The notes under the pieces were generated by a model. The model was given only the letters and a program-made list of their open reading frames with translations, had not been told where the DNA came from and did no database searches. Positions 17,319-59,110 of a stretch of 64,000 nucleotides of DNA are shown here, one piece after another. This DNA comes from Chara braunii (taxonomy: Eukaryota > Plantae > Charophyceae), in assembly GCA_003427395.1 (NCBI GenBank), contig BFEA01000021.1:2424510-2488509 (forward strand), given 5' to 3'. Positions within the stretch are counted from its first letter, which is position 1. Every line of letters begins with the position of its first letter. A program made the position numbers and the translations under genes.

Positions 17319-17363
<45 letters not shown>

Positions 17364-21562: not shown

Positions 21563-21623
21563 ATGGAAATTTACTTAGAATTTTCAATTTTGTAAATTTG
21601 AGATGCCGGGGCCATTACCGCAC

Positions 21624-23233: not shown

Positions 23234-23447
23234 CCCGGGTCTGAGAAGAGAAAAGCCCACAGCCCTAGGAAAACAACAAACACCAATCTTTGAGTCATAA
23301 GGTGTATCAATGGGACGCTGGACCCGGTTTCCAGCAGGTGCTGCTCCCCACCAATAGATGGAGCAGCCCGGCAGAGAAACCCTCAATCCTGACGGTTCTC
23401 TTACCACCACCGGGATAGAGGGTTTACACAAGGGCTATTCTTGCAAC

Positions 23448-23487
<40 letters not shown>
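23234..23487 (+). mobile_element. 5'-truncated LINE 3' end or SINE with the conserved structural motif
   Basis: Motif at 23309-23366, poly(A) at 23449-23487, and an imperfect TSD CTAGAATGGT (23224) / CTAGTATGGT (23488). Confidence 0.7.
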
Positions 23488-25318: not shown

Positions 25319-25806
25319 AAATTAGACTTCATTTCCCGCTGCAAAGTTGATAGGGCCGCTATTAGGGCGCTTTCGCCGATGTGAACAAAAACTGCACCCT
25401 GCCAATTTGAAAGTTCTTTTTGGCTAGTTGGAAACACCATTTCTCATTTGGACCAAATTCAGAGCAGGAGCGCAAAAATGCGGCAGCCCAGCGGGCCAGC
25501 GCGACATGCGGGTACCACATTTTCGTGAACCCTGCAAACTTTAAGTTGCTCGGTCACCACAAGCGGTTAGCAGGGACCCCCACTTTTCATATCCCGCTGC
25601 AAAGTTGCTCGAGGAGTATGGATTGTCACAAAGGGCTGCCTGCTCGTTCTCAAAAAAAAAAACAAAGAAAGAAAAGAAAAAGAAGAACAGCCTGCTGAAC
25701 CTTCGGCGGAAACACAGCAAGGGAGAAGAGGTTGACGAGGAGGTTGACGAGGAGGGGGTTGTGTCCGACTGTATCGTCAGACCTTGCAGTGACTCTTTGA
25801 GTCCTT

Positions 25807-25928
25807 GGGCCTCGGTTCACTACTCTCGACATGCACAACAGACAAAAATCATGGTGGTGTATCTTTCCATGTTCTAGCGGAAGATTCACTCTCGTTTTGC
25901 ACATTTCGAGAGTGGTGGACTGAGGCCC
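25807..25928. mobile_element. PIF/Harbinger-like MITE, 122 bp
   Basis: TIRs GGGCCTCGGTTCACTACTCTCGA / TCGAGAGTGGTGGACTGAGGCCC with TSD CTT. A sister copy is at 49434-49555. Confidence 0.8.
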
Positions 25929-26025
25929 CTTGCCACAGCAGGCTGCCTTGGCAACAACCATAGGCATAAGGGGAGAAGAAGGAACCGAAGACTGCAACAG
26001 AAGGCTTTGTCAGACTTTCCTTGAA

Positions 26026-31455: not shown

Positions 31456-31515
31456 GCAAACTGTTTCGTCGGAGTTTCACCGACTCATCAGGAGGCTGAA
31501 CCCTCAACAGTCTGC
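31456..31515 (-). ncRNA. Type III hammerhead ribozyme
   Basis: Minus strand: GCAGACUGU-U|GAGG-guucag-CCUC-CUGAUGA-GUCGG-ugaaacu-CCGAC-GAA-ACAGUUUGC. Stem III is 9 bp, stem I 4 bp and stem II 5 bp. The core is perfect and the GUU cleavage site lies between 31506 and 31505. Confidence 0.9.
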
Positions 31516-32290: not shown

Positions 32291-32397
32291 CGTCAAACAG
32301 AGCTGCCCGGTAAACCATAGGCAGAGAAGGAGAAGAGGACAACAAACGAGGGGCTGTGACAAACTATTTCGTCGGAGTTTCACCGACTCATCAGGAG
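32291..32397 (-). repeat. 5'-truncated copy of the hammerhead-bearing repeat (core and stem II kept, cleavage site lost)
   Basis: Near-identical to 31389-31494. Further copies are at 32451-32522, 37456-37559 and 37573-37624. Confidence 0.85.
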
Positions 32398-32524
32398 CCT
32401 GTACATATATTTATACATATATAATTTATAAATATATAAATATATTATATCGTAAAACAGAACTGCAGAGAGGGAGAAGAGGACAACAAACGAGGGGCTG
32501 TGACAAACTGTTTCGACGGAGTAA

Positions 32525-35760: not shown

Positions 35761-36079
35761 GCTGCTCTGGTTATATGCGTTAAGCGACGAGTTCGGGTGT
35801 ACGAACAGGACATGGAACAAACAGACTGTACCTGGCCGCCGATAGAAACAACCGAAACATTGCACACACCTCTGGTTCTGGCCCTTACGGGAAGTACTTG
35901 CAGTCAGATACATCCACTACTGGCCGTAAAAGTGGCCAGATACATCCCAGAAAGCGGTCTGAGGAGGTCAGGATTCTAACTCAGAGGTGTGAGATCACTG
36001 AGATGACAGCCAAAAGTTTCACAAAGCTTTGATGTTATATACATTTGTCGGACAAACAAGATGCGCCGTGGATACTCAC

Positions 36080-36408
36080 AGGCCATCGCCCTTCAGGTTT
36101 CCAGAGATGTTGGCGGATCTGGAAATCGCTTTCCTTGTCCGCCTGTTGAAAAACAGCTCGATGATTGCTCGAAACAGACTAAATCGCCTCAGAGCGAGAG
36201 CTCCCGGGATTTTCTTGTCCTCGTCAAGGTAGAGATCACCCGCCCAGAACCGCCCGCCAACAAAGTCATCGACATCCAAGGTTTCCAGCCCAATCCCAAC
36301 GACCCGAATGTTGTTCGCCTGTAGATGCGGCCAGGCCCGGCTCAATTCCATTGCTCCCATCCGGCATAATCGGCAACCAAACCGCCTCATTATGTGTATG
36401 ACCACCGG
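36080..36408 (-). CDS. PRXL2B: Peroxiredoxin-like 2B, exon 2 (CxxC active site)
   Basis: Acceptor TTGCAG|CCG and donor CT|GTGAGT. Encodes PVVIHIMRRFGCRLCR...VVGIGLE...GDLYLDE...ISGNLKGDG. Confidence 0.9.
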
Positions 36409-36560: not shown

Positions 36561-37786
36561 GAGGAGGAGGAAGGAGGAAGGAGGAAGGAGGAAGGAGAAG
36601 GAGGAGGAGGAGAAGAAGGAGAAGAAGAAGAAGAAGAAGAAGAAGAAGAAGAAGAAGAAGAAGAAGAAGAAGGAAGAAGAAGAAGAAGAAAGGGTGCTGC
36701 ATAGATCACTCCGACAATATCCGAGCCTTCCTTCTGAGGGAGGAGAATATGATTGTGAGGGCATATTCACTATGACTTGTTGAGTGATTCTGGGAAATAC
36801 TTGCAGTCAGATACATCCACTACTGGCCGTAAAAGTGGTCAGATACATCCCGGAAAGCCCTATTGTGAGTATGGCCTGATTTTTGGAAAGTAGCATACAC
36901 AGACAAGGTTCTGCAGCCTTGCATAAAATTTACCCCCAAGCCTTGCCTTCTTCTTTCCGGTGCACCCCCCACCCACCCTCTCACTCCCACTCCTCCCTTC
37001 CCCCCCTCCCTTCCACCCTTCTCCTCCTCGCCACCCCTCCTCTTGTTGGACTTGGAATGAGATCGACACTTTCCGGAATAGCAAGGGGCCAATTGCCATG
37101 ATGTTATAGTCACAGAGAACCGGAGATTGCCAGCAAACCGTTTCTAGGTAGAAAGGGAGAAAAGAACAAGAAATGTTTGGGGAGGCTGTGGCAGACTTCT
37201 TACCTCCTTGACCTTGAGCACAGCAAGATCAGGTTTGTGATTCTGTGCGTGAAGCTCCAGTGACAGCACATCACAGCATTGCAACAAATGCCGCCAGCGC
37301 GTGTGCCCTTCCTTGCTGATGCTTCAGGACACACGTTGAACCTGGTTTAGACAAATGGTCCAGCATTTGGAACCGTGGTCGTGTTCCCTGCTATGGTTTT
37401 CTTACATACGATTGATCTGCCAGAATAAGGATATATATTAAGGATATATATATATCGTCACAAACAGAACTGCCCGGTAAACCGTAGGCAGAGAGAGAGA
37501 AGAGGACAACAAACGAGGGGCTGTGACAAACTTTTTTGTCGGAGTTTCACCGACTCATCTATATATATATATCGTCAAACCGTAGGCAGAGAGGGAGAAG
37601 AGGACAACAACGAGGGGCTGTGACGCCCCTCCAAAAAAAAAAAAAAAAAGATAAATGCCCAAAGGAGTATTAACCGATAGCGCAAAAATGTGCGCGTTTT
37701 CTGAGTACAGTGCATGCGGAAGTGTAGTCCTTGGGGGAGGGGGGGGGGGAGGAAGAAGAAGAAGAAGAAGGAAGTGTAGTGCTTGC

Positions 37787-37910
37787 GCACCTTTCTCAGC
37801 CCTCTTTTTGTGTCAAGATCAAGTACAATGTATCTGTTCCGATCGGTTTAATATCAGATCCGTGGTCCATCAGACCACATGATATTACCAAAAAAAGAAG
37901 GAAAAAAAAA
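37787..37910 (+). pseudogene. U2 snRNA-derived retrocopy (5' ~100 nt, ending before the Sm site) with an A-rich tail
   Basis: ACCTTTCTC..AAGATCAAGT..GTATCTGTTC..GTTTAATATC.GAT..GTGGTCCATCAGACCAC..GATATTA resembles plant U2. The branch-pairing GTAGTA is altered. A degenerate TSD GAAGG-N6-AGTGCTTG flanks both sides. Confidence 0.8.
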
Positions 37911-38148
37911 GAAGGTATAACAGTGCTTGTTCATTGCAAGCATGCACGACAAGCACTGTTTGGCCTCCTTTCTCTCTCTTATACTGCTGCTGCAGGAGGA
38001 GGAGATCCTGTTTTACTTCTTTTTTTTTTCCTTTCCTTTGTTTCTCAAAAAAAAGGGCCAGGGCAACTGACCTGCCCCATATCATCATGCAACTGACTTG
38101 GCCCATTCAGAATTGTCAAAATTTTAATCATTAATCATTTCTTTTCAT

Positions 38149-38219: not shown

Positions 38220-39707
38220 AGTTGGTTCCTGTGTTAACTTTGGGTTTACCACACCTGAAACAGGCTGAGAGGGGAGGAAGGGTCGCAGGACCAAGATGGG
38301 AAGGTCCATACCGTGCAACTAGACACCACGGACACGACACTCCGGCACTAGCGCCGCGCTGCGACAGGAAGGCAGGCCCGACCGGCCCTTGCAGCGACGG
38401 CAGGTTTGACCTAAGAGCGGCGCCGCCGGACAGCGACGGCCCCTGAGGTTTGACCGCTGGGTGGGGGAGTTGACTTCGGCCTGCTGAAAGGCGACGGCCA
38501 TAGCCGACAGAGGAAGCATCCCCCCACGGGCAGCCAGTGCAAGAAGGAAGACGAGTAGCGGAAACCGGCATCACCGACAGGGAAGAGCGAGAGTGTGGAG
38601 AGGAACGGAAGACCCGGGCACAGACATGTTGGCGGGCGACCTGGTGTATCGCGGAAGGAAAGAGGAAGGAGGCGTCTACCACCCGCTATACAACACTAGG
38701 AGGACAAGAGACACGTGTAGTAGGGCGAAAAGCAGCACGTGCAGGTCAATCACGGAAGGAAAAAGAAGGCGGCGACTACAGCCCGCTGTACAACACGGGG
38801 ACAAGGGACAACGGGGGTAGTGGGGAGAGAAGCAGTATGTGCAAGAGGAAGCGGGTGGGGGGCAGGTGGGTGGAGGGCGGACACCCGGGGTCAATGTGGT
38901 GATACGGCCAGCGAGAGACTCGAAGTGGGGGCAACCCATCGGGGAGCAGGAAGGAGCAAGAACCCCAGGCCGGAGGGGCACCAGCCTGGGGGGTATTGCA
39001 TCCCTTCCTCGGGGACGCGCAGGCGTGAAGGTATGTACGCAGCCAACCCTGATCACTCCTCTCCCCTCCCTGATTCACTTCCCCGATCGCCATCCATGCA
39101 GAATTCACCGGTGGAAATATAACAGGACACATAGAATAGGATTTCTAATTCTGAAGGTGGGTTGTATGCGCCGCGGGCACGTGTATGCATGAGAAAGACG
39201 GCTGAAGATGGCGAGCATCTAAAGACGGTAGTAGCACGGGGATGGGCACCTACTCGAGGCAGTAAGCAACCCGATGCGCATGTGTATGACCATTATCCCG
39301 AGTTGATACACGTGCACGACAGCAATCGAGTGTGCAGGGCCCGATAGGGCTGATTACTCGTGACCTCAAGTAGATGTAATACAATCTACCTTCGAGCTCA
39401 TGACTTTCCTTTTTTTTTTTTTTTTTTTTTATGGTGGGCCAAGATGGGCAGCTCCTACCAGACCCCGGGACCAGGCCTGCGGGAACGCACCGAAGGAAGA
39501 AAAGGAACATGCGGCTTGACTCGATGATCTTCTACAAGGGAGCCATGCGTCAGATCATGGCCTCTCATTTGCGAGCAGCCTCTAAACGGGGAGTCCCTAA
39601 AAAATAAGTGGTTAACTCGGGGGCGGAACGCTTACCCCCCCCCCGAGCCCTCGACGGTACACCCTGGACAGCTGGGACAAGGCCAACCGGCTCCCCTGGC
39701 CGGACAG

Positions 39708-42700
39708 ATGGCGCTAGCACAATGGACCGAGCAGGAGAATCACCAGGGGGAACACCCCCACACCAATATGGTAGGGGCGGTTCATCCGCTGGCCCCACCC
39801 CCCGGTCACATAGACCAGAGCACAATTGGCCTTGGTCGAAACCAATCAACACCAACCATGCAAAAAGGGACAAGTGTCACGGAGGAGGGACAACTGGGAG
39901 ATGGTACCAGTGCAAATGTCAAGGAAACGCCACGACAGGGGTCTTGGGCAGAGATGACAAAGAAATCTCAGGCGTCTCCCGGGCAAGGAAGGGCAGGAGA
40001 GTTACAGGCCCCTGAGTCAGGTGGCAGGGAAGCATCCCAGTCAGGATCCTGGGCAGAAATAGTAAAGAAGCCGTTCCGGGGCAAAACCGTCGTGATTCCA
40101 AGGGGGATTGGCACAGTTGGTGACCCCAATCAGCATATCCCCCTGGATAACGTGGCCTCGGCGCGGGCCTTCTTCTTAACCAAATTCTTATGTGCATCTG
40201 ACTCCAAGGTGGTGGAACAAGGGGGAAAGAAAGTGCTGGTGAAAACCTTCCCGACAGAGAAGTTGGAAAATAGGGATGGGTCTATCAGAAACACGCAAGC
40301 AATTGGGTGTTCTTTGATGACGCAGCATCCAAATCAACGAATGATAAAATAAGGTGGATAAGACTACGTCTCGAAACACTAGAACGTGATGCAGAGGCGG
40401 CTAGAGACTCCTTTCTCATTCAACCCCTCTCCCCCACCACCTTCACGGTTCTGTCTATGTATGAAAAGGACGAACAAGTTATGGATGGATGGAAAAGCAT
40501 AAGATGTGGTCGGAAGTGAGAATCTATCTGTGGTCTCCCCCAAAACAGCTAGGACCAGAGGAGCGGAGGGCGCAAATGATGGCACGACATTTTTGGGTTG
40601 AATTTCGTCATATCCTGGTCGAAATTCAAGCCACCTTCTTACAAGATCTGGGACAACGCTATAAGATTCTCGACTTCATCGATCCCCTCCCCTCCTTTGT
40701 GGCACAACGGGACGACTATCTCATGTTGGCCCTGGATGTCCCCACAAACCCCCCGTTTGCCATTGATGATGTCATTCTGTACAGAATCAGAGAGAAAGAG
40801 TACAAAATCCATACCGCTCACAAGTTACGGTCATGGTGTTTTAAATGCAAGAGCTATGGCAACTTGTGTACTGATGATCCTTGCCTGGTTCACCCCGCTC
40901 GAATGGCCAGCACCACGGGACGGCTGCAACGGGACCCTTTCAGAACCACCCGATGGCACCCGGTGGATCCGGGCCATGAGGGGTGGACTTACGTGGAAGA
41001 GCCCAGAGGGGTGGGTCACTCAAGGGCTGGGAGTGGGAAGGCACCGGGGAACCAAACTGGGATACCCGACCTCCGGATGCATGGGCCCCACCGAAACCCT
41101 TGGAAGTAAGAATGAACGAAGGGGGCCAAGGGACGGGGCAGGAGCAACAGAGCCCACAAACCACACTACCTAAGAAGGGAGACCGGGGGAAGGAGGCGGA
41201 ATGGACCACAGTGCAACCTAAGAGAAAGCGAGTTACTCTGCAACCGGGCAATGGAGGGGCGTCCTTCGAAAAGCAGAGGAGNNNNNNNNNNNNNNNNNNN
41301 NNNNNNNNNNNNNNNNNNNNNNNNNNNNNNNNNNNNNNNNNAAGGAGGCGGAATGGACCACAGTGCAACCTAAGAGAAAGCGAGTTACTCTGCAACCGGG
41401 CAATGGAGGGGCGTCCTTCGAAAAGCAGAGGAGGCAGTTGGTGGCCCGGAGATGGCAAGATAAAAATCCAAAGAAGGGGCCCTCACTGGATGAGGCCCGG
41501 AAGGGAAAGGATGGGACTGACAAGCAAATAAAGAAAACCAAGGACAAAAGGGAGGAAACACAACCGCCTCCTTTGGGTCGGCAGGAGGACAGCACACAGG
41601 CCCAGGGGAAGCCCTCGGTCGAACCATCTACATCGCAGAGCACAGACCCTTTTGTGAACGCCTTCGGCCCCTGCCCCATGGAGGTGGAAAAAGAAGTCAA
41701 AAACCGGCAAGGATCCCCCTCCCCCCCCGGATGTGGTAATGACAGACGCTGCAAAGTCCCAGACCTCTGAGCCGGCCCCACTGCATATTAAAGTCGAATC
41801 CTTGCCAGATTGGCTGATGCAGAGGCTGCAGATCCAGTACACCGGCCTCCCCACAGACTTCTAGGACAGCACGTATCGTGAGCTTGTACCGATGTTAGAA
41901 GGGAGTGACAGTTTGCGCTCAGCTTTAGAAAATGGTCCACCACAGGGCCATCAGTGGCCGGAAAGTCTGCAGAAAGTGTATTATGTTGTAAACAAGCGAT
42001 TCTGACCGCCAGCCCCGCCCATTGTTAAACAACATTTGTCCCAGGACATGGTGCCGCTGACCCAACAACGAGATACCCCTCAAGAGGAGGTAGGCCTGGA
42101 CGCACACATGTTCCACCATCCGGAGACACAAAACCTCAAGAACCCCCTCTGACCACGCAGGGCGACTGGGGAGGAAATGAGGGCACTGACCTGTTGTCCC
42201 TAGATCCCCGGACGTCTGGGAAACCACTAGAGGCACGACGCAGGATGATGGGGACCCATGTGGGACTGTAGATGGCTTCAGGGCCAACCGCAAGGAGGGA
42301 GAGCAGGACCCGGACCCGGAGGAAGAGCCCCGCCCCAACAATCAAGGGACAAGCGCAGTAAACTGAGACACGAGCTAGAACAGGGGAGATACCAGGAAGT
42401 CCCTGCTCTGAACGGGGTTCTGATGTTACCGCTCCGGACGAAGAAGGGAAGATGGGAAGTGGGCTTAACTGTACCTCCGGCCCAGGAAAAATATGGGGGG
42501 GGTAACTTTGACGGGCTCATACCCCCTTATTGCCAGCCTGCCTGCACATATGAAAGATAAATTGCTAGCGGAAGAAATCAGTATCCACATCCAGAAAACA
42601 TTCGTACCAGGAGTGCAAGGAAAGTTGTTGTGCACCAACACAACAAGGGCCCAGTGGGAAGTATTGTTGTTAATGGATCTTGCTCGGGAGGCAGGCCTCA

Positions 42701-42852
42701 GATGGTTCTCACACACAACTCTCCTAGACATGCAACTTCTAAAAGTGAAATCTAACAATGCATGGGCCGAGGAGGAAGTCCAAGCCTGTCTATGTCGAAT
42801 TCTCAAGAGCCCTCTGCTCACAGACCTTACAGACCTTGACTCGGTGACTTAG
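39708..42852 (+). pseudogene. LINE-B ORF1, frameshifted
   Basis: PLDNVASARAFFL, FWVEFRHI, WCFKCKSYG knuckle and a C-terminal LPLRTKKGRWE...EAGLRWF. Homologous to LINE-A ORF1. The start is uncertain. Confidence 0.8.
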
Positions 42853-42901
42853 CAGAGACTGTAGAGAATCGAGAGGCATTGGGGAACCGGAAACTCTGCT
42901 G

Positions 42902-45900
42902 ATGGACCCAGTGAGACTGATCTACGAAAAAGACCCGGCCTGGAGCAAAGGCCTGCGGGAGGCAGACCTCGACCTATGCACATTTAATGTTAATGGTCTG
43001 GCAACGACCACACTAGACAAACGGCAGGCGATATGGGAACAACTCAGAGGCATGGCTGGGAAAACATGGGCGGATGTCGTCTGCATTCAAGAGACCCACC
43101 TTCTCGACACCCCGGACCATCACCGTGCCCACCACCTGATATGGCCATACCAGGCCTTCAGGGCCCATGCCCCAAGGCCAAGTAGCGCCCGGGTGGCGAT
43201 CTGGTTCCCACCATCCTCCCGTGCAACACCGGAGCATTGGGTAGTAGACAAGGAGGAAGGGAGGTGGGTTTCGGTTTTGGTAATGTTAGAGGTGGAACTG
43301 CTTTGCATTATCTGCGTATATGCTCCAAATACGGAAGGGGAGAGACGGACTTTCTTTGAGGGTATTCGCCAGCAGATCCCTGCAGGCCTCCCGGTGATCA
43401 TTGCAGGAGACGTTCATGTCGCCCCGGACCGCTGGTTAGACAGGTGGAGAATTCCCTTCCCTCCCCCGACATACATAATAACAGACGCAGCAATCATACA
43501 AGAGTTGTGCTCTGGCCTTCGTGTATTCGATACTTTCAGAAGAGCCTTCCCGCGGGAAAGAGGTTCTCTTGCTTTAGGAATACGTGTGCGGAGACCTGTT
43601 CCAGGTCACGGATTGACCTCATCCTTATGTCAAGATCTGGAAGGTGCAAAGCAATTTGCATATTTACTTCCCCGCAGCCCATATAGGGGATTCGACCACA
43701 CGATTGGTGGAGTAACACTCACCTTCAGGAAGCAGCCCGATCATGGGCCAAACTTTTTCAAACTTAACACTGCGTTGTTTCACCAACAAGACTTCCCGAG
43801 CCTAATGCGGGACATGTGGAAATGTTGGCGTCAACAAAAACAACTAATTGATTCTTAGATCGTATAGTTCAATAATGGCCTCTTCTTTATGGGTCGTAAA
43901 TGTAAAGAATATGCTAAAAAAATGGCTAATAAAAAATTCCAAGAAGAAATGGAAGTTCAATATCGTATTCAAGACCTACAGCAAAAGCCTCCTGGCCCGG
44001 AACTACAAAATCTTAACCGCAAGCTCTTAGAATTCGCTACTTACAGATGGCGGGGCATAAGAATCAGAGGCAAGATATATAAGCACAACACGAAAGGGGC
44101 TATGGATTCAGTTTTTTCCACTATGGCCAAAGCCAAAACAAGAAGACAATCAATCGAGGCATTCTTGGACCCCGTTGACCCAAACCGGCCCCTAGCCACC
44201 TCTACACCACAATGCATGAGGATGGCTAGGGATTTTTACAAGGATCTTTTCACATCCCGTACTAAGGACATACCAATAGAACAGCACCCAGAAATCGACG
44301 CCTTCCATACCCCGCTCACTAAGACTATGACCCCCCAACTGAGAGAGGCGTTGGAACGACCAATGACTAGAAACGAGATATGGACCGCCTTACTCCAGAT
44401 GGACGAAGAGAAGACCCCTAGTGTGGATGGCATCCCAAAAGAATTATGGGTTGTCTGTTGGGATTGGTTGACAGATGACCTTATGAGCTTTTATGAAAAG
44501 GTGTGGGAAGAGGGGGTGATGGGGGAGATGGTGGGGCAAGGGGTGCTCACATTGCTATATAAAAAAAAGGGACAAAATGAACATACGAAACTATAGGCCT
44601 ATTACGCTGTTAACCGTCGTTTACAAAATGCTATCCAAAGCACTGGCCAACCGGATGGCCCCGGCACTGGAGCAGATAATACATCCTTCACAAAGCAGCT
44701 TTATCAAGGGTCATCGCATCCACGATAACATCCTATTAGTGAACGAACCGTTGCGCCTCTCTCGCCAGTCCAAGTGCAATGCCACCTTTATCTTTACAAA
44801 TTTCGAAAAGGCGTACAACCATGTTGACTGGCATTTTCTAGACAAGTGTTTAGCTAAAACGAATTTTTGGGAAGACTTCATACAATGGGTCCTCATTCTC
44901 CATATCAACGCCACCACCAAAGTGCAAATCAATGGGCACCTAGCCCCTGACTTTCCCCTGCAACGTTCGGTCAGACGGGGCGATCCCTTGGCCCCTTATC
45001 TTTTCTTGGTAGTCATGGAGGCATTGGCAACCAATTTGAGAGCCAACAAGGACATCCGTAGGATCCACGTGACCTCTATCTCGGAGGATGTAATGCAGGT
45101 ATGTTCCTTGTTTGTCGACGACCTGACCCGGATTATTGAGGCCTTCCATCGGAATACAAAAGAAATCGAGAGTCTGATGAACCGCTTTTGCACTCTTTCA
45201 GACATGTCGGTAAACTGGGGTAGTAAGACCCTAACGTGGTGGATGCACCACAATGGCAGCAGACCCCCGAAGCGACCCGGGGTCACCTGGCGCCCGCTGG
45301 AGGCCCCGATCCGGGTCCCGGGGATCCAACTGTCGGCTGCAGGCAAACCTGAGTGAAACGACAAATGGATAATGGACCCGACACTCCAAAAACTTGCTTC
45401 ATGGACAGACAAACACACCTCACTCTTTGGTAGGGCTCTCGTTATTAACAATGTGGCGTTTGCGTCTCTTTGGTATAAATCTGCTATTTGGCGTCTCTTT
45501 GGTATAAATCTGCTATTTGGCCCCTGTCCCGAGAAGCCTCAAGATCCTTGAGACAGCGGGTTGCAGCCTTCCTGTGGCGAGGGAACCACGAAACACAGAA
45601 CGTAATGAGCAGGGTCGCGTGGGAGGCGATTGTTCAACCCAAGTCCCATGGCGGCTTGGGGATTCTGGATCCGGACACCCGGACAACTGTCCTGGCCCTG
45701 CAATGGCTTGAAAGATTAATCTGCACACCTAACCTCTCATGGGAACCCCTAACGTTAGAGCAAATAGCACGACTAACCCTCAAATCCCGGCCTTCCACCC
45801 ATCCTCTTGTTTGGTTGGACGACGTGTTTTGGGCAGTCCCCAGATCCTCCCGTGGACCGGTTGCGCATTCAGACCGCGATGCAGCCCGTACATATCTTTA

Positions 45901-47293
45901 AAAAAACAACTTTTGGGCCCGCCTGATCCACGACTGGCGGCAGGTCCCCCTCCCGGACAGACCAGAGCCCAGTAGGTGGGAGGAGGTGCTCCGCCAACCT
46001 CTGTTTGGAAATCGTTGGATGACAGACTGTCAGGGGAGAGTCTTCACAAGTTCTGGAAGTCCGTGGAACTCTTGGGTCAGGCACGGTGTCCATAAAGTGG
46101 AACACATATGGGACAGTGCACTCAACGATTGGATATCAGAAGCCCAACTCAAAGTAAATTGCCACACTGCCACCGGATTGGGGAAAATCTTGCACAAGTA
46201 ATTTTCTCCCTCCCCTTAGCATGGGTGCAGATACTGTGACGCAACCCACGGTTTCTGGAGGGAGATTAGGTGGATATCGACGAGGATGAGGCTCGTGTCG
46301 GTCAAGTGTTGACTACTAGCCGAGAGGAAGCTCTGGTAAATCTGTTTTACAGAACCAGCCAGAACAGACTGATACGTGGGGTCCTGGATGAGGTGTTCTA
46401 GCTCCCGAAAGCAGCTATTCACAGGGTGAGAGTGTTGAAGGAAGGGGACTACTGGGTTGTCTTCAGGCCCGAACTGTCTACTCAGAAACTCCCCATCGAC
46501 CCGGATGAATGGAGGTGGCGGATCCCGTCGCGGGACCCACAACCCCCAATACCGGTACCTTCACAGCATGGGGGTGAAGGCCACTTACAGGCTACTAAGA
46601 TCTCGAATTAACCTGAAAGATCAAATCGTGGACCGATGGGCGAGGCACCTGAATGTATCTTTGGAGACGCTGAGACCAATCCAATGGTTTAAGGAGTCTA
46701 AGTGTAAACCCACTAAACTAGCCTTGCTACAATGGCAAATTGCCCACCACTGCCTCCCCACAAACGCATGGTTCATCAACCACTCTAGTCTGGAGCAAAA
46801 AGGCACGACCCTCCCATGGTGCGCAGCTTGCCTGGAGGGTTTTCCATCCCACAAGGCAAATGAAACCATTGAACATCTTTTCTTGCAATGTCCATCCTCA
46901 ACGCTTGTCTGGCGATGGTGGGCAAGAATCTGGGCCGCCCTCGGAACAGGCACTGACTGGCCATGGGAGTGGAGAGCCCTGCTTTGTGGACATTGGACGG
47001 CCCAAGGTTCAACTTTCACTTCTAACCTGTTCTCGATTGGTAGGAAAACGGTCTTGTGGGCCATCCGGAGGCGTCGTTGCATATTGACCATTGAAGGTGC
47101 ACACATGGGGAGGGGCGAGATGACTAAGATAATCAAGGACACAATTGAGACAACAATCAGGGCTCGATGGACACGTCTGATACAGCTGACAAAGCCCCTC
47201 TCCAAAAAAAGTGACATCATCCGCTACCTAAATGAATTCTGCATGGACTGGCTGGGAGGGGAACATGGGGGGAGGATAGCAGGGGTACAATAG
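42902..47293 (+). pseudogene. LINE-B ORF2 (APE-RT-Zn finger), disrupted
   Basis: TFNVNGL, VCIQETH, IAGD, NYRPITLL, FEKAY, VRRGDPLAP, LFVDD and CAAC...ETIEHLFLQC. Confidence 0.93.
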
Positions 47294-48839
47294 GATGGCT
47301 GGCAACTAGATGACAATCATCGATTGGAAGCCAGGGCAAAGAATTATCGACTCTGTTTCAATGATTGGACCATGATCCCTGACGAGATTCCCCTCCCCCC
47401 TCCCCCCCCCAACAGATTTCCCAGACCCTTTCCCCCTCCCTAATCACACATTGATGAAATTAAGCTGGTACCGCAGGGAGAAGGGAATAGAGGGAATAGA
47501 GATGGCCCGCTAAACCTGGACAGGGGAGGAGTTCGTTAGCTGGGCAGCGGAAATGGGGGGCCCTCATCCGGTTGCCCCCTGGATGAAGGAGCCCCATCCT
47601 CATCATTCCAACTGCCACCTACCAACCCCCCCTCTGTGCCTGCTTGAGCAGGGCCCCGAAAAGATATAGGCAAAGGTCAATAAGTCATTGTACATCCCAT
47701 AACCTGTGCAGTCAATCCCTTGGAATCCAGGGCAAACAATGCTGACAGGTTCCAGACTCATTCTCCTCCAACAAATTCGGGTTACCTGATGTTAATGGGA
47801 TGCTGGACCCGGTTTCCAGCAGGTGAAGCTCCCCACCAATAGATGGAGCCTCCCCTAGAGTGATAGAGGCGTCTGCTCCTACCAGCACCACTATCACCCA
47901 TGAGGGAAGTTTGCTCAAAAAAAAAACAAAAACAAAAAAAAAACTTTGGGTTTATCCTGCAAAAAAAATATGTATATATTATTTATTTATTTATTTTAAT
48001 CCTTCAAAAAATGGATGTCTCCTTGGGTGAAACAAAATGGTGTAAAGAAAAAGAAAGTGTAAAAAGCTTCGCGTCATCTTGATCACGTCGGATTAGCACC
48101 TACAAACCATCCTTGTTGAGGATAGTACACCTACAATCCCGATCCCGTCGGACGACAACGTGAAAATTCCACGGATGTACACCCAGCATGACCCCCCATC
48201 GATAATTTTGCACCCCCCTTACCCTCAATACTGCAGGGCTAGGCTCACGACCACGCGTCATTATTAAAAAAAAAAAAAAAAACTAGGGAAAAAAAGACAA
48301 CATAAATTTATTTATAATAAAAAAGAATTGGGGAAAAACTAAATGCATTTAAAATAGAGTAAAAAATGTGCGCAAGCTACAACCTAGCTCGAACAGGCTA
48401 TTCTCTGTCGTCTGAAGGGCTCGCAAGACGCTCGTCTTTCGTCCAGATCGAGACACGTGGCAATATCCACGTGACACCCACGTGTCCCGTCGATGACACC
48501 CACATGACATCTGCGGGCCGATTTCCAAAAGCCGCGCGTGTCATCAACAAAGACCACATGGGTATACGTGACACCCACGTCGTATGTCAGCTATGGACAA
48601 CCAGGTGGTGCTAACACATACTCGCCGCCCCAATCTGCAATCATGAAACACAACACCAAGCCAGCCGACAGTGGAGACGAAAAATGGAGAAAGAAGAAGA
48701 AGGGAAAGAAGGAGAAAAAGAAGAAGAAGAAGAGGGAGAAGAGGGAGAAGAGGGAGAAGACGCCAGAGTTTTGAAACACAACTTGATTAGGATAATCTTG
48801 AAGCACAAAAACGGAAGACGGGCTCCCGTTAGGCGGAAG

Positions 48840-48888
48840 TGACCCGACCGGTTTCGCCTGGTCACCTGCCAGGACTCATCAGGGGTCA
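48840..48888 (-). ncRNA. Minimal type I hammerhead ribozyme (Penelope-like/dimeric architecture)
   Basis: Minus strand: UGACCC-CUGAUGA-G(u)CCUGG-caggUga-CCAGGC-GAA-ACCGGU-C|GGGUCA. Stem I is 6 bp, stem II has one bulge, and stem III is the palindrome ACCGGU. The GUC cleavage site lies between 48846 and 48845. Confidence 0.8.
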
Positions 48889-48909: not shown

Positions 48910-49038
48910 TTTTTTTTTTTTTTTTTTTTAACAATTTGGACCATTTCTCGATTTATGCGTGTCATCCTTGAAAGCGCAGGGGCCATGTTAATCCTCATTC
49001 TCTGTATCGTTCCAATTTTAACGGATGTCCCGAAGGAC
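48910..49038 (-). mobile_element. U6-derived SINE-like retrocopy 1
   Basis: GTCCTTCGGGACATCCG...ACAGAGAA[TGAG]GATTA...GCGC[TTTC]AAGG...GGTCCAAATTGTT followed by A20. Confidence 0.9.
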
Positions 49039-49067
49039 AGAACTCTGACCATCTACAGTATTAATAG

Positions 49068-49193
49068 TTTTTTTTTTTTTTTTTTACAATTTGGACCAAT
49101 TCTCGATTTATGCCTGTCATCCTTGAAAGCGCAGGGGCCATGCTAATCCTCTTTCTCTGTATCGTTCCAATTTTAACAGATGTCCCGAAGGAC
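49068..49193 (-). mobile_element. U6-derived SINE-like retrocopy 2
   Basis: Same body with insertions [AGAG] and [TTTC] and a poly(A) tail. Flanked by a 29-bp duplicated spacer (49039-49067 / 49194-49222). Confidence 0.9.
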
Positions 49194-49222
49194 AGAGCTT
49201 TGACGATCTACAGTATTAATAG

Positions 49223-49350
49223 TTTTTTTTGTTTTTTTTTTAACAATTTGGACCATTTCTCGATTTATGCATCACATCCTTGAAAGCGCAGGGGCCATGC
49301 TAATCTTCGTTCTCTGTATCGTTCCAATTTTAACGGATGTCCTGAAGGAC
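49223..49350 (-). mobile_element. U6-derived SINE-like retrocopy 3
   Basis: Insertions [CGAA] and [TTTC], a poly(A) tail, and TSD TACAGTATTAATAGTT on both sides. Confidence 0.9.
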
Positions 49351-49433
49351 TACAGTATTAATAGTTGGAAAAAACTTCAGCCGACTACGACACAAAGTTG
49401 ACCGACCCTTCGCATCGTCATCGTCAAGTCATA

Positions 49434-49555
49434 GGGTCTCGCTGCACTACTCTCCACATGCACAAAAGATAAAAAACATGGCGCTGTATCTTTCCATATT
49501 CTAGCGGAAGATTCTCTCTCATTTCGTGCATTTCGAGAGTAGTGCAAGGAGGCCC
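49434..49555. mobile_element. PIF/Harbinger-like MITE, 122 bp
   Basis: Homologous to 25807-25928, with TSD ATA. Confidence 0.8.
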
Positions 49556-51130
49556 ATAACCACGTCATCAGCCATACGTCCTCTGATCGAATCGCTTAAC
49601 TACCCTATCTCTCTTACATCCAGCCGGTAATCCCGAGGCGCCTTACACAACGACAAAACCACAGGTACAGGGTTTGAACCCCCCCCACAGACCCGTCGGA
49701 AACCCACAGACCCTTACGCAACCCCCAGAAGACTCCAAAATACCTCACACCCTACTGCCCCAAGCTCGAAACCTGAAAGGCCATCATGCGAAAAACCAAA
49801 AGACCAAAATAACAAGGCCTTGTCCATTATCAACCAATAAAGATGACCCAAACTACCCTTGAAATTTTCTATGGTACCCCCTCTAATATAAACCGAATGA
49901 ATGACTTACCCCCTAAAGCGGGCGTATCACAACCCACGTCGGCCGGGAGACCCCCCCCCCCGAGAGAGGGTTAATGAAAGCCCCAAAATTCGGGGGTTTT
50001 CGCCACATCACCACAAGCAATGTCGTCGAAAGTTTCGCGAGCAAACAATGAAATGCTCATAATACAAACATAATTAAAAAAAAAAAAAAACAGGCCACAA
50101 AAAAAAAAAAAAANNNNNNNNNNNNNNNNNNNNNNNNNNNNNNNNNNNNNNNNNNNNNNNNNNNNNNNNNNNNNNNNNNNNNNNNNNNNNNNNNNNNNNN
50201 NNNNNNNNNNNNNNNNNNNNNNNNNNNNNNNNNNNNNNNNNNNNNNNNNNNNNNNNNNNNNNNNNNNNNNNNNNNNNNNNNNNNNNNNNNNNNNNNNNNN
50301 NNNNNNNNNNNNNNNNNNNNNNNNNNNNNNNNNNNNNNNNNNNNNNNNNNNNNNNNNNNNNNNNNNNNNNNNNNNNNNNNNNNNNNNNNNNNNNNNNNNN
50401 NNNNNNNNNNNNNNNNNNNNNNNNNNNNNNNNNNNNNNNNNNNNNNNNNNNNNNNNNNNNNNNNNNNNNNNNNNNNNNNNNNNNNNNNNNNNNNNNNNNN
50501 NNNNNNNNNNNNNNNNNNNNNNNNNNNNNNNNNNNNNNNNNNNNNNNNNNNNNNNNNNNNNNNNNNNNNNNNNNNNNNNNNNNNNNNNNNNNNNNNNNNN
50601 NNNNNNNNNNNNNNNNNNNNNNNNNNNNNNNNNNNNNNNNNNNNNNNNNNNNNNNNNNNNNNNNNNNNNNNNNNNNNNNNNNNNNNNNNNNNNNNNNNNN
50701 NNNNNNNNNNNNNNNNNNNNNNNNNNNNNNNNNNNNNNNNNNNNNNNNNNNNNNNNNNNNNNNNNNNNNNNNNNNNNNNNNNNNNNNNNNNNNNNNNNNN
50801 NNNNNNNNNNNNNNNNNNNNNNNAGGTGGTTGCATGTGCCCAACTGCCTTTGGCCTATGTTTGGCCCAGTACCCGTATCCAGCCCAGGGCCTGCTTCACA
50901 TACATTCACACAGGCGGCCCAGGGCCTGGGTTTACTCAACCAACTGTCGCTGCGCAACTGCCTGAATTTCCTTGAGTTGCTCAGGGGCCGAAATAAGGCC
51001 CTCAGGGGCCTCGTCTAGCCTGCCTTCACTTAGGGCAGCCGACAGGCTCCCGGAAAGAGGTTGAATGGGGCTCATCGAGGCAGTGGCCTTGCATTCCCTC
51101 CTCCTTGGCTTCAACAGTCCTCTGAGATGC

Positions 51131-54100
51131 TCAATCTTCGACCATCGGGCGCTTTCCTTTCTGCAGAGATTTCTCATAGTGGGCTACCACTTGTGGAGCG
51201 GTCTGCATGAGTTCATCCCTGGTAAACCATCGGTCCTCCTTCGGATCAATATGATGCCGGAACCGAACGCGGTACTGCAGCTTTGGTTTCGGAGGACGTC
51301 CCCTGCCTGTTGGTCTTGATACCGACAGCTCTCTGTGGTCCACGATATCATCGATGTCCACCTCTCCGTCCATGGTTGGGGGCAGCATTGAGCGACGAGA
51401 AGGAAACTGATGAGTCTCTTTGAAAGGTGCTAGCTTGGAAGCGTGAAAGGCAGGGTAAGTACGGAGATGACCAAAGATCCGGACAACATAGGATGGCCCA
51501 TCCAGATCTGTCCCAACGATGTCCAAGACTTCCCAGCGTCCAAAGTATTGGGGCATGAATTTGCGGGAAATCCCGTGCTCCTGTCCCAAGTCTGAAGACT
51601 TAACCCAGACCTTATCCCCAACCTGAAATGTAAAAGGCCGACGGTGTTTATTTTCAGACTCTATCATTGCAGCCTGCGCCTTCTGCATATGTTCTACAAC
51701 CTGCTGCATCTTCTGTTCATAGCGGTAAGCAAATTCTAAGGTACCTGGTGCAGCAGTGGATTGATTCTCAGGGAGAAGAAAGTCTAGGGGCAGTCTAGGC
51801 TTAAATGTTAGCAGTAAGCTGTTCGGGCTCACCCCGGTGGCGCTGTGTACAGCGTTGTTGTACACGCTGGCGATGAGAGCAAGCTTCTCATCCCAGTCCA
51901 CCTGGTTGGGCTTGATGTAATGCCTCAACAGGTGTTGTACAGCGCGGTTCAGTTGCTCGGCCTGACCGTTGGCCTCTGGGTGATTCCCAGAAGTCATCTG
52001 CAACTGAGTTCCCTGCTCTGCAACAGCGGCCTTCCACAACTCACTGGTAAACCGGACAAATAATAGACTTCGGTAAACCAAAGTCCCTGACCCAATTCTC
52101 TTTGAACATTCTGATCACGTACACCGTTCTTGCTGTTTCCGACATTGCACTAACCTAGCATACTTGCTAAATCTATCCACAATGACAAAGATGTGTCGCA
52201 TCCCACTCTTGCTGGTGATCAGAGTATCCATAAAGTCCATGGACAGACTCTCACCAGGCCTTTCCGGAATCGGAAGCGGCTTCAAGAGACCAAGAGGGGC
52301 ACGTGTACGAGGCTTGTCTCTCTGACAAACTTGACATGTTTCCACGTACAACTGAGCATCTCTCATCATCGTGGGCCACCAGAATCGCTGCAGCAGATTA
52401 GCTGCGGTCTTTTTGTACCCAAGATGACCGGTGGCATCATGGCATTCTCCTAAAAACAAACTACGCAAAGACTCGCTATTCGAGACACACAAACGCTTAT
52501 TCCCTGCCTTCTCAAGGAACAACAGGCCATTGACCAACTCAAACTCGACAGAGGTCTTCTTGTCCTTCGCCTCAAGTCTGCGCATGATCTCAGACATGAA
52601 CTGATCCTCGCGATAGGCTTCCACCAAAGACTGAGTAACATTGTCCGTCAGATCAAACTCAGTAATCAGCGCACCTGAGAAATCAGGTCTACGCGACAAG
52701 GCATCAACAACCTTGTTGTACTCCCCTTTCACATACTGAGGGTCAAAGTCATATTGCTCAATGACTTCGATCCAACGCTTGAGGGCGTCAGAGAGTTCAG
52801 GCTGAGTACTCATCCATCTCAGGGTCTGATGATCAGTCCTTAGGATGAAGAACCTCCCAAGGAGATAGTGCCTCCAATGGGTCAGAGCCTTGTAAGCCGC
52901 ATACAGTTCCTTCTCATAGGTGGACTTTGCCAATTTCTGAGACGGCATCTTTTTCGACATGTACTCGACTGGCCTCAACTTTGGCCCCTCCTGCTGCGCG
53001 AGCACGGCGCCAATGCCGTATTGGCTGGCATCCGTGGTGACTATGAACGACTTGTCAGGATCAGGAAGTTTCAAGACCTCGTAGTGCGTCAACGCATGCT
53101 TCAGATGTCTGAAAGCAGCCTCGCACTCATTTGTCCACTCCCATGGGGTGTCAAGGCGGGTCAGATCAGTCGAAGGAGCGGCCACTATGCTATAGTTCTT
53201 AACGGAAGTCCTATAGTAGCCTGTCATTCCCAAGAAAGATCTCATCTCAGTCACAGACTGAGGACGTGGCCAATCACGAATGCTGGCCACCTTCACGTCA
53301 TCGGGCTTCAACCCTTCCGCGGAAATCTCATGACCCAAGTACAAGACACGGGTGCGGCCAAACTCGCACTTCTCTCCGTAGATCTTGAACTTGTACTGTC
53401 GTAGGAGACTGAGGACTTTGTCCAAATGTGCAACATGCTCCTCGACAGTCTTACTAAAAGTAAGTATGTCATCGAGGTACACGATGACAAACTTATCCAA
53501 GTAGTCATGGAATATCCGATTCATGGCGTGCTGAAAGGTGCCAGGAGCATTGCAAAGATCGAAAGGCATCACCACAAACTCGTACAGACCGCACCTGGTC
53601 TGAAAGGCGGTTTTGTGTTGATCCTCGGGCCGGATTGCAATCTGATGGTACCCGGACTTCATATATATCTTACTGAAGTACTGACACCCTTGCACTCTAT
53701 CTAACATATCGTCGATGCGCGATAGGGGCTCTCTCTTCTTTACAGTGATGGCATTGAGGCCCCTATAATCAATGCACATCCTGAGTGTACCCTCCTTCTT
53801 CTTAGGTATGAATAGTACTGGAGATCCATAGGGAGAGACACTCGGTCGGATCCAACCCTTCTCTACGAGTTCCTTGAGTTGGCGGAGAAGCTCATCAAGC
53901 TCGCCTGGAGACATCCGATAGATCCTACCCTTCGAAATACTAGACCCTGGGAAAATCTCTATCGCATGGACGACCTCCCTCTCAACAACCCCTGTCGGCT
54001 CTTCAAATAGATCAGGGTACATAGCAAGTACTCCCTCTATCTCCGGCGGCATTTTCACCGGCTCGCCTGCGGCAGAGACATAGACTAAATACATACCCTC

Positions 54101-54793
54101 CTCCTGATTTTGCTTATAATAATACATACCCTCCTCCTGATTTTGCTTACAATAATTGTAGACCGCGGCCGCACACATGCACCCATATGACTCAATCAGA
54201 CTACTAGCTTTGAACTTATGTAATCTGGCGGTCCCTCCACCTGGCAAAGTGTGTTTGGCCACTTTTCGGTCCCAGTCAAACTGGGGCTGTGCTACAGAGA
54301 GGTAGTACATACCTAGTAACATATCCATTGGGAGTTCGTCACTCACTAGGAACGAGACGCGATGTCTCAAGTCCCCTCCCGCGTACAGGAAACAACACTC
54401 AACATCCTGGAGGTAGTCATTGACTACCATGCGCTGTTCGTTGGCACAGGTCGACTCCACAGGTCGACTCAAGCGCTGCACTTGCCCCTGTAAACGCAGT
54501 CTCTGAACGCATGCGCGACTAATAAAGTTTCGTGTCGAGCAAGTGTCATAATAGGCCCCGGCCTTGTGGCCGCCAATAACAACCTCGCTGACGAACATCT
54601 CACCCTTTGGGGCTTTGACTAATGTCGTCCAAGAAGCTAGCGGGTCTGATCTAGACCACTCCACCTCTAGCTCCTCTAAGGACTCAAACACATTCATCGA
54701 ACAGAGGCTCGATGGGTCTGAATGTGCTTGCGGGACGACGCTGGAGTCAGAAGCTTGGGCCATCTCTCGAGATGGTGAGGGTGTCTCCACCAC
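51131..54793 (-). pseudogene. Gypsy pol (protease, RT, RNase H, integrase, chromodomain), frameshifted in the integrase
   Basis: YYDTCS (PR), LRMCIDYRGLN, VYLDD, TDASQYGIGAVL, H-H-CQVC, SMDFM, ANGQAE and a C-terminal IDDIVDHR...YRVRF...DRW. Confidence 0.93.
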
Positions 54794-54894
54794 CTCGACC
54801 CTAGCAGGAACAGCTACTATTCCTACTGGCCCGACGTGTTTCCCGAAGCACTACCTGAAGTACTGGCAACGTTGCTACCAACGGGATGAGAGGA

Positions 54895-56497
54895 TCACAA
54901 TACCTGCCCCATCGTAGGCGGGATCTTTTCTGTCACTTTCTTATTGCAGCACTTGAATTGGTTGTGGCCATATTGACCACAACAAATACAGGCCTGCCGT
55001 GAGTAACGGTCTCTCCACAAGTCCTCTGTAAGACCCGCTTTCTCCCATGGAGGAGCATTGGGGTCAACTTGACTCCTAAACCGGGAACCTCCACGGCGTC
55101 TACCGGTCGCCTTTCCTTTTTGGCTACGGCAGCGACCACTCCACCCTCTCAAGTTTCTACGCTGCCCGCCTCTGAACCTACTCCCTCCTGGAAGTGTTCG
55201 TCTACTTCGATAGTAGAACCATCGTTATCGACAAACATTAAGCGGCCCTTCGCCTTCCAGTTAGGAGGCAGTGTCTTCTTTCTCCCATCCGTAGTGGGTG
55301 CCTGTCCATGCCCTATCTTAGCTTCAAGGTCTAGGGCCATCTTGCTGAACGAAGGAAAGTTGTGCATATTGATGTTGGCCTCTCTTGCCAACTGGTTCCT
55401 GAGAGGCTGAGAAAAGCATCTCAAGTACGAGGTAAGCAGGACCTGGGGGTCATAGCCCACCCCTGGGACATAGATCAAACGCTCAACAACGTCGGTGGCT
55501 TCCCTTACTGACTTAAACTGCCGCGTGTGCAGTGTCAGGATCGCATCAGTGGCCCTTTGGGCCTCCTGAGGATCATGCCACCTTTCTTCCACCATCTTCA
55601 AGAAGTCCAATTTCTGGGTGACCGCCCAAGCGCGGAAGTCATGACCATACCCCTGGAGCTGCACTAAACCACTCAACCATCTTGCTGCACTACCCTCTAG
55701 GTAAGAAGCAGCCACAAGCACTTCTTCGTGTGGCAAGGTGAGTTTACACCTGACGTAGACTGGCACCGCCCTCAACCAAGTGTCGAGGTCTTCGCCTCTC
55801 TTGTCTCCTGTAAAAGGTTTGGGAGCGGCGATGGCCGTCTTTGGAACCCACTGGGTCTATCCCGGTCCCTGCATCACTACGGGTTGTGGACCCTGTGCCA
55901 CAGATTGCTGTGCCAATTGTTGGGGTTGTGTGCCCTGCGGCTGCACAGGCTGCGAGACAGCAGGCTACGTGGTGACTGCAACCTGCGACGGAGTTTGGGT
56001 GAACACTGTCTGAACAGGAACCTGTAAACTAGTCCCTGCTGATACCCCTCCTGACAGCTGCATGCCCAGGGAAACGATCGCAGCGATGACGGGGCTACAT
56101 ATGGGGATACCCCTGTCACCGGTGGGACAGAAAAAGGAGGATATGACACGGGCCAGGCACCAGGCCCGGATGGTGATGGTGCCGCCTGAGCACGCCCTAC
56201 CAGAATGGCTACGCTCTGTTGGATATCCTGAAGGATGGTAGTCTGATGCTCCTGCATCTCTATTACTCCTAGCAGGGCCCTCCTAACTACCCTCACATCT
56301 TCATCCATGTTCGTCAGGTCCATCGTGTCTAACTCCTCTATGTCTGCCCCTCTCCGCTGCATCCTGGCTCTTCTTCTAATCATCTTCTCCTTCTTCACTT
56401 TTATTTGTCCTAATGCCTGCTGTAACTGCGCCTCCTGCGGGGCTGCCTGCTGGATGGCGACATCCTCTGGGGTCAACATTGTTGCCTGGCTTGCCAT
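54895..56497 (-). pseudogene. Gypsy gag, disrupted
   Basis: MASQAT..., AASYLEGSAARW and the CICCGQYGHNQFKC zinc knuckle. Confidence 0.85.
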
Positions 56498-56998
56498 AAC
56501 GCCAGTGGACTGACTCACGGTCTGCGCGACTGTTGACCCGACGCAGGCTTCCAGTAGGCTCCGGTAGCCTGTGGCCCAGCTCGAAGAAATCAGGCCTTGG
56601 GCCTGAGGTGGTTGCATGTGCCCAACTGCCTTTGGCCTGTGTTTGGCCCAGTACCCGTATCCAGCCCAGGGCCTGCTTCACATACATTCACACAGGCGGC
56701 TCAGGGCCTGGGTTTACTCAACCAACTGGCGCTGCGCAACTGCCTGAATTTCCTTGAGTTGCGCAGGGGCCGAAATAAGGCCCTCAGGGGCCTCGTCGAG
56801 CCTGCCTTCACTTAGGGCGGCCGACAGGCTCCCGGAAAGGGGCTGAATGGGGCTCATCGAGGCAGTGGCCTCGCAATTCGGAGTAGCTTTCGGAGTTCGC
56901 CACATTTTATGATTTTTCTCCGAATTCGATATTTTTGCCAACTATTTCGTTACTGGTCCAAATACGTTGAAGACAAAACACACACACACACACACACA

Positions 56999-57059
<61 letters not shown>

Positions 57060-57154
57060 TAATAATAAATCAAGGAAATATGGTAATTTACTAATTTCAG
57101 TGAAAAATTCGCCGAAAATGACACCACCTATGACACCATTTGTGCACCTTGGCA

Positions 57155-57762
57155 GGGCAGATTTGCAATAAGCCCGATCGCTTATCGGACATCGGACATC
57201 AGCCCGCTTGGCAGGGCAGATTTGCAATTAACCGGATCCCTTATCGAAAATCAGCCCTCCTGGTCTTTTCCTCGATGACACCGTCAGTGATCCGGCTTAT
57301 TCCAAATCTTCCCTTCCAAGGGGAGTAGAGAAAAGCAAACCTCCATGCAATGACAATCGCCAAGTGTGAACACTCAAAGCCCAATGAAACGACATGAAAA
57401 GAAAGAAGCAAGAAGAAGGAAAGAAGAAAGAAGAAGAAGAAAAAAGAAGAAGAGAATCAGCTCAGTATATTGCAATAAGCTCAATCAAAATGGTGAGACC
57501 CGCCATCTGGCGAGAACCACCGTGTCATGAAGCGCAGCTGGCAAAAAGGAACCCGACAGCTGTTTCGGCCGGCTTGCCAGAACAGGTCTTCCAAGGGGAG
57601 TCTCCTCCCTGCCGTGGCCAAATCAGCCCCCAAAGCAAACCACATAATATTTCAAATTTGTGCTCCATTATTCGACAATCTGAGGGGGTCTTATCAAGGG
57701 GTCTCTTCCAGGGGCCCTCATCCTAGGGGGAGTCGCCGATCCGGCTTATTGCAAATCTGCCC
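57155..57762. mobile_element. Non-autonomous TIR element of about 600 bp
   Basis: GGGCAGATTTGCAATAAGCC.GATCG ... CGATCCGGCTTATTGCAAATCTGCCC, with subterminal repeats. No clear TSD. Confidence 0.6.
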
Positions 57763-58543
57763 TTACTTATTCCTAACTCGAAGATATGGTTGATACAAAG
57801 AGTTTTTTTTTTGTTTTGTTTTTGTTTTTTTTCCGGGTTGTTGATACGAAGTATTGCCTTTTTAATAAGTTGCCTTTTGCACCTCTTTAATAATATTTTT
57901 TATTTTTATACTCTGTTGTTTCGGATACGATTTAGCAAGGGGGCAAGGAGGTTGAGGAAAGCGAGGGGGGGGGGGGGGGGGGGGAGAAGGGGAGGGGGAA
58001 GAGGGGATCTATTAATCCTTCTCCCTCGATAACACTTTTCTTCATGCTAGCCGGTGGATAAGCAAACGGGACGGATGCACCCCAGAATAAATGGGGCCGT
58101 GTGTAATTGTGTCTGTAAAAAAAAAAAAAAAAAGTCCTGCCAAACGCCGACACGTGGCAATACACGACACCCTCGAGTTTCTTTAACTCCCACTGTACCA
58201 TAGGAGCCGCCACGTGGCATACCTTCTGCGCCGACACCTGGCATCCATCATCCTCCATCTTTCCCTAGTAGATCGGCTTCTCCTCAACCCTCTACCCTCT
58301 CTCCTCCTCTCCTCATCGTCTTCTTCTCCTCCTCTGCCTCTCTTTTCTTTGCGACCCACCCACCTCCCACACCTCTCCAACCTATCCCNNNNNNNNNNNN
58401 NNNNNNNNNNNNNNNNNNNNNNNNNNNNNNNNNNNNNNNNNNNNNNNNNNNNNNNNNNNNNNNNNNNNNNNNNNNNNNNNNNNNNNNNNNNNNNNNNNNN
58501 NNNNNNNNNNNNNNNNNNNNNNNNNNNNNNNNNNNNNNNNNNN

Positions 58544-58597
<54 letters not shown>

Positions 58598-58934
58598 CAC
58601 ACACACACACACACACACATCCCTGTGCTCTCCCAGGGTAACTACAGCACTTCGTCAAACAGAGCGTCGCAAGGATCAAGCTGCGGACAGCCGGCTTCCT
58701 TGGGTACAGAAGAAGACATCAACATCCTTACGACTGCATCTGACTGGAAACCTGCGCTCGATACATTCATAACGCCCAAGGTTGCATCCACGTACACGTA
58801 CCCCTTACCACCCCCCCCATCCCCTCCCCTCCAAGCACAGCGCACTCCGACCATGAATATCCACACAAGATAACTTTCCGGTCCGATACAGTCCCAAGTA
58901 GCGTGGCTTGTGTTCAGGCGAAAACGGACAGCAC

Positions 58935-59068
58935 GTCCTTCGCGACATCCGTTAAATATGGAACGATACAGAGAAAGAAGATTAGCATGGCCCCTGCGCT
59001 TTCAAGGATGAACCGCATAAATCGAGAAATGGTCCAAATATTAAAAAAAACAAAAACAAAAAAAAAAC
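58935..59068 (+). mobile_element. U6-derived SINE-like retrocopy 4
   Basis: Full U6 body with [AGAA] and [TTTC] insertions, an A-rich tail, and TSD ACGGACAGCA at 58924-58933 and 59069-59078. Confidence 0.9.
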
Positions 59069-59110
59069 ACGGACAGCAGCAGCAGTTAAAAACACTCCTA
59101 CACACACACA

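Follow-up and report, generated by a model that had tools for sequence, protein, structure and literature searches.

The question raised by this locus is why four copies of the U6 snRNA, all within one stretch of the Chara braunii genome, depart from canonical U6 at the same two positions. The stretch, hereafter the window, comprises 64,000 nucleotides of contig BFEA01000021.1, and all positions without a locus label refer to it. Proteins encoded in it match proteins of Chara braunii almost exclusively, with identities of up to 92%. A previous inspection of the letters alone (the sequence-only reading) had taken the copies for an independent SINE family derived from U6. From our point of view, the balance tips slightly towards a different origin, namely that they are poly(A) retrocopies, made by an L1-type ORF2p, of a defective U6 paralogue that would have kept its upstream promoter.

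Four U6 matches extending over positions 1-105 of the Rfam model RF00026 were found in the 64-kb window, three of them lying next to each other on the minus strand (copy A, 48930-49038; copy B, 49085-49193; copy C, 49242-49350) and one on the plus strand (copy D, 58935-59043). With 66-71 bits (E 2e-14 to 6e-16) they exceed the gathering score of the model (44) and will hence be mis-annotated as U6 genes. All four start at +1 and consist of a 109-nt U6-derived body and an A-rich tail of ~18-25 nt, so that the full-length retrocopies occupy 48910-49038 (A, with 20-nt poly(A)), 49068-49193 (B, with 18-nt poly(A)), 49223-49350 (C, A-rich tail) and 58935-59068 (D, A-rich tail). An oligo-T terminator is present in none of the four, a non-U6 body is likewise absent, and their resemblance to the 3' ends of the LINEs in the window is limited to the poly(A). 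Divergence from the variant consensus ranges from 1-5%, copy A being nearest to it (1% outside the insertions) and copy D reaching 5%; outside the insertions, this consensus tracks the Rfam model closely.

The Rfam alignments bear out the claim that each of these full-length copies combines a +1 start and a poly(A) end with two 4-nt insertions. Insertion 1 is located 3' of the ACAGAGA box (48994-48997 (-) in copy A, 58976-58979 (+) in copy D) and insertion 2 in the loop of the ISL (48970-48973 (-) and 59000-59003 (+), respectively). Insertion 2 reads TTTC in 4/4 copies. The insertion-1 blocks across the four copies are TGAG, AGAG, CGAA and AGAA, with two of the four positions variable, and the AGAA of copy D repeats the adjoining four bases in tandem. 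It had further been proposed that in two copies the insertions are complementary and could refold the RNA. The complementarity exists as text, but the refolding does not follow from it: the helix is absent from every MFE structure, its pairing probability is 0.02 in copy B and 0.22 in copy D, and forcing it would cost 3.4 and 0.6 kcal/mol, respectively. Pairing between the insertions as the main fold was ruled out by these low pairing probabilities together with the MFE folds. A TTG replacing the oligo-T end, considered as a third diagnostic, was dropped, as a U6 copy outside the window (L005, see below) ends similarly without having the ISL insertion.

One could imagine that both insertions are present in the working U6 of today's Chara braunii, or in a minor but functional variant of it, in which case the copies would be ordinary retropseudogenes. 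This would be in line with the position of insertion 2 in the terminal loop, where the upper stem of the ISL is predicted to be still foldable (-2.0 vs -2.7 kcal/mol), with the canonical order of the bases directly before the catalytic AGC region in copies C and D, with the closeness of the consensus to the U6 model outside the insertions, and with the fact that every insertion-free copy in our sample is older than the variant copies. However, neither insertion site shows gaps in the Rfam consensus, and insertion 1 is not constant among the four copies. In addition, the box that binds the 5' splice site would presumably be shifted away from U2/U6 helix I by insertion 1, and U4/U6 stem II would presumably be interrupted by insertion 2. 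Because of the displaced box and the broken stem, we consider it very unlikely that a present-day U6 carries the insertions.

The number of independent insertion events can be read from the target-site duplications (TSDs), which had been described as flanking copies B, C and D. They are clean for two of these copies. Copy C has a perfect TSD of 16 bp (left arm 49351-49366, right arm 49209-49224, both (-)), the right arm of which lies partly inside the 29-bp spacer between C and B (49194-49222 (-)), and copy D has an exact TSD of 10 bp (58924-58933 and 59069-59078, both (+)) at a target unrelated to that of the triplet. The duplication at copy B, by contrast, is imperfect: the target sequence that forms the 29-bp spacer between B and A (49039-49067 (-)) recurs at 49194-49222 with 3 mismatches and ends exactly at +1 of copy A. 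For copy A itself, the TSD amounts to at most 5-8 bp and is imperfect. As the duplication ends at the +1 of copy A, and as no other two copies are as similar as A and B (5 differences in 104 nt, vs 7-9 for the other pairs), copy B may have arisen from A by DNA duplication; from the arrangement of the sequence it would either be a tandem duplicate of this kind or an insertion whose 5' end was joined by homology to A. Copies B and C share one first-strand nick as their insertion site. At least three, perhaps four, independent insertions thus share both indels, and since the indels are common to all of them, they must already have been present in the template RNA. The copies differ pairwise by 5-9 nt in clustered changes although the TSD of copy C is perfect, which could point to several sources. 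A homologous empty site for the triplet was not found, no ORF of a Penelope-like host was recognised around it, and the base that follows the poly(A) gave no signal of a target signature shared among the copies (C after only 14/55 long A runs).

Outside the window, we used twelve loci of GCA_003427395.1 (designated by L and a number; 395 kb without N), which were retrieved via protein look-ups and are biased to Gypsy-rich regions. They contain five U6-like copies at four sites. The ISL insertion occurs in 0/4 of the copies that span its site, the fifth copy having lost both sites to an internal deletion, and the copies of L009a, L012 and L007 are without either insertion. As the copies of L009, L012 and L005 that lack the ISL insertion end in A tails, U6 without this insertion has been retroposed as well. 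Neither a double-insertion copy (4 in the window) nor a promoter-bearing U6 gene was found in the twelve loci, and when metagenome contigs were scanned for patterns of the ISL-insertion motif and of the 5' end of Chara-type U6, nothing matched. Divergence from the variant consensus (insertions removed) amounts to 7.5-15% in the outside copies, vs 1-5% in the variant copies. Given this difference and the absence of the ISL insertion outside, the variant thus appears to be a younger sub-lineage within the sample.

Two of the outside loci hold copies of unusual structure. At L005:11224-11350 (+), an old U6 retrocopy has ~3 extra bases near site 1 and no ISL insertion; it possibly represents an insertion-1-only lineage, its decay of 15% limiting the typing. 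At L009:52160-52339 (-), two insertion-free U6 copies are joined head to tail with no A tail at the junction; the second one has an internal deletion, and the pair is followed by one A tail plus a probable TSD, a structure which we read as a U6-U6 chimeric retrocopy. The window also contains two U6 remnants besides copies A to D. The fragment that had been listed at 21624 is real (21600-21648 (-); 23/23 match), but it cannot be typed, being disrupted at the insertion-1 site and ending before site 2. The second one, a decayed and 3'-truncated copy at 18857-18916 (-), is without insertion 1 and 14.5% diverged.

Three independent insertions in ~10 kb here compare with none in the 395 kb from the other Chara loci, a local clustering which counts against a paralogue source and to which the selection of the window may contribute. 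One could speculate that the variant is a small, mostly local family, in which one founder gave rise to a few derivatives by DNA duplication and nearby re-insertion. The stacking of three copies at one site and the close relationship of A and B, with a duplication ending at the +1 of A, would agree with this, as would the contrast between 3/3 insertions with the double variant in the window and 0/4 outside (Fisher p 0.03, inflated by window selection). However, copies C and D each possess a separate TSD and A tail and were hence made through RNA, and the outside sample is so small that its 95% upper bound still allows for the double variant in 53% of the U6 insertions, or at 7.6 per Mb. A mainly local origin seems unlikely to us.

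Two assembly gaps are located nearby, one (50114-50823) at 764 bp from copy C and the other (58389-58543) at 392 bp from copy D. The copies and their TSDs are clear of both, and the gaps affect nothing but how far apart the triplet and copy D lie. The first gap adjoins the truncated LTR of a Gypsy-type LTR retrotransposon (50824-56875 (-)), whose two LTRs have 96.7% identity over 270 bp and whose left LTR starts at the gap, and the second one adjoins a CT microsatellite. Just upstream of the triplet lies a palindromic 137-bp MITE-like repeat (49427-49563), which recurs at 25800-25936 and has relatives in L002, L006, L008 and L009. On the other side, ~20 bp downstream of the tail of copy A and on the same strand, a minimal type I hammerhead-like sequence (48839-48888 (-)) was found by eye; it has no Rfam match at E up to 1 and no second copy in the loci compared. 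A type III hammerhead match (31458-31513 (-); 45.8 bits, just below the gathering score) belongs to a family of short repeats with relatives near 32292-32522 and 37444-37624 and several more in L001:17854-21593. Finally, an AhpC-TSA_2 (peroxiredoxin-like) coding stretch at 36076-36350 (-) may be an exon or a processed pseudogene.

The claim that a template bearing the insertions was copied by LINE-type machinery is supported by the retrocopy anatomy described above and by the presence of L1-like LINEs in the window. Two broken elements of this type, with approximate ends, were identified, one at 39700-47945 (+) with APE endonuclease, RT and poly(A), and one at 3105-10872 (-) with a poly(A) end; they are ~63% identical in the RT and ORF1 regions. 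The LINEs of the window carry APE and RT, and their best solved relative is human L1 ORF2p. The element at 39700-47945 is of the kind that could supply the enzyme. A number of 5'-truncated, A-tailed LINE relatives (14256-14349, 17320-17503, 21507-21562 and 23303-23486) have a conserved 3' UTR motif in common. The window further contains a 3'-truncated retrocopy of the U2 snRNA that ends in an A-rich tail and is flanked by an 8-bp TSD (37783-37935 (+)). Taken together with the insertion-free, A-tailed U6 copies, this suggests that the LINEs of Chara evidently copy snRNAs in general.

A further question is where the transcript that served as template came from. Matches to A and B boxes in the copies are at chance level and remain so with the insertions removed; the idea that the ISL insertion creates an internal B box was ruled out by the same promoter-box scoring. 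No TATA- or USE-like motif is present in the 100 bp upstream of copies C and D, while copies A and B are preceded by the tail of another copy. The 5' flanks of the four copies are unrelated, with no shared 5' extension, and this, together with the exact +1 starts, argues for a template that was initiated at the U6 start. U6 has an upstream type 3 promoter (PMC10533338; PMC4494074), and Kojima points out that snRNA genes are not known to have an internal promoter (PMC4494074).

These results bear directly on the proposal of an independent U6-derived SINE. The copies do have a short non-coding head derived from a small RNA, the hallmarks of retroposition (A tails in 4/4; TSDs of C and D) and shared diagnostic differences relative to insertion-free copies, the parent gene itself being inferred. 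Hence the shared insertions and the LINE-type copying stand. What they do not have is an internal Pol III promoter in each copy, a non-U6 body or a LINE-derived tail, and the double variant does not occur in the 395 kb. A functional U6 gene, with a TATA/USE promoter and an oligo-T end, is represented by none of them either, and the combination of A-rich tail, TSD and missing promoter and oligo-T corresponds to the group II processed pseudogenes of U6.

A true U6-derived SINE, in which some A-tailed copies are transcribed and serve as new masters for successive subfamilies, appears less likely to us, though not without support. Insertion 1 would then have come first and the ISL insertion later, and a head-first insertion at an existing U6 gene could supply the promoter. 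Several observations fit this reading: copy B sits in exact +1 register before copy A, as the promoter-capture idea would have it; the variant copies, at 1-5%, are young; indels common to independent insertions are the very argument by which the SINEU-3 family was defined, and SINEU-3, too, forms tandem insertions around a TSD (PMC4494074). The copy in L005, with its extra bases at site 1 and no ISL insertion, would match an older insertion-1-only lineage, but at 15% divergence it is too decayed for confident typing. Moreover, there is no internal promoter, unique body, LINE-derived 3' tail or shared 5' extension in the variant copies, and the double variant is found at 0/4 other U6 insertion sites. 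The more specific version, a self-propagating SINE made of U6 only, in which successive insertions removed the spliceosome role and in-register insertion at U6 loci provided the promoter, is in our opinion rather doubtful.

The closest known counterparts are the group II poly(A) processed pseudogenes of U6, which have the same +1 start, A-rich tail and TSD, lack a promoter and depend on L1-type machinery (Doucet et al., 2015; PMC4476161). They follow the functional gene, however, whereas in the Chara copies, which reside in a charophyte alga, two derived insertions in the catalytic core are common to independent copies. The SINEU-3 elements of crocodilians resemble the Chara copies in being snRNA-derived, short and polyadenylated, in their shared structural change, in their tandem insertions around the TSD and in having no recognisable promoter (Kojima, 2015; PMC4494074). 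In contrast to the Chara copies, which are pure U6 plus two insertions, they are derived from U2, carry ~40 bp of non-U2 3' sequence, number ~1,600 copies and have a defined target transposon (PMC4494074). A SINEU is defined by a head from U1 or U2 snRNA (PMC4494074), whereas the body here is U6; as for a target preference in common with a partner Tx1 element, one nick was reused in the triplet and the target of copy D is unrelated. In the literature searched, which included few subscription papers, there was no report of a U6 family in Chara or of a U6-only SINE. Work of Hasnaoui and colleagues from 2009 reportedly describes an ancient U6 snRNA-derived repeat family in primate genomes, which, going by its title, shares the U6 origin with the Chara copies.

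By analogy, copies A to D behave like the lineage of a master-gene retroposon. The rodent BC1 RNA is tRNA-derived and has internal promoter boxes. It is described as the master gene of the ID elements (Shen et al., 1997, as cited in PMC11260458), where, according to that account, one promoter-bearing small-RNA locus seeds many retrocopies; the corresponding source locus in Chara is inferred. For the reading we favour, a defective paralogue as the source, the sequence of events would be the following. A U6 paralogue of Chara, at one locus or a few, would have gained the two 4-nt insertions while keeping its upstream Pol III promoter, and its RNA would have continued to start exactly at +1. Probably unable to work in splicing, the altered RNA would then have received an oligo(A) tail, presumably through adenylation by RNA surveillance, and would have been copied into new sites by target-primed reverse transcription, most plausibly by an ORF2 protein that recognises poly(A) and is encoded by L1-like LINEs. 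The resulting copies, lacking a promoter, would be dead. Poly(A)-tailed U6 copies with TSDs are a described class, for which nuclear adenylation has been proposed as the route in mammals (PMC4476161).

What the variant means for the biology of this lineage depends on its extent in the genome. If the family turned out to be large and nested, it would represent a SINE of the plant lineage built from U6 only and, being young, a tractable case for studying the transcription of snRNA-derived SINEs that lack an internal promoter. If, on the other hand, a single variant gene is the source, the copies would demonstrate that a defective snRNA paralogue can seed a lineage of retrocopies, which would be a plausible first step towards a SINE.
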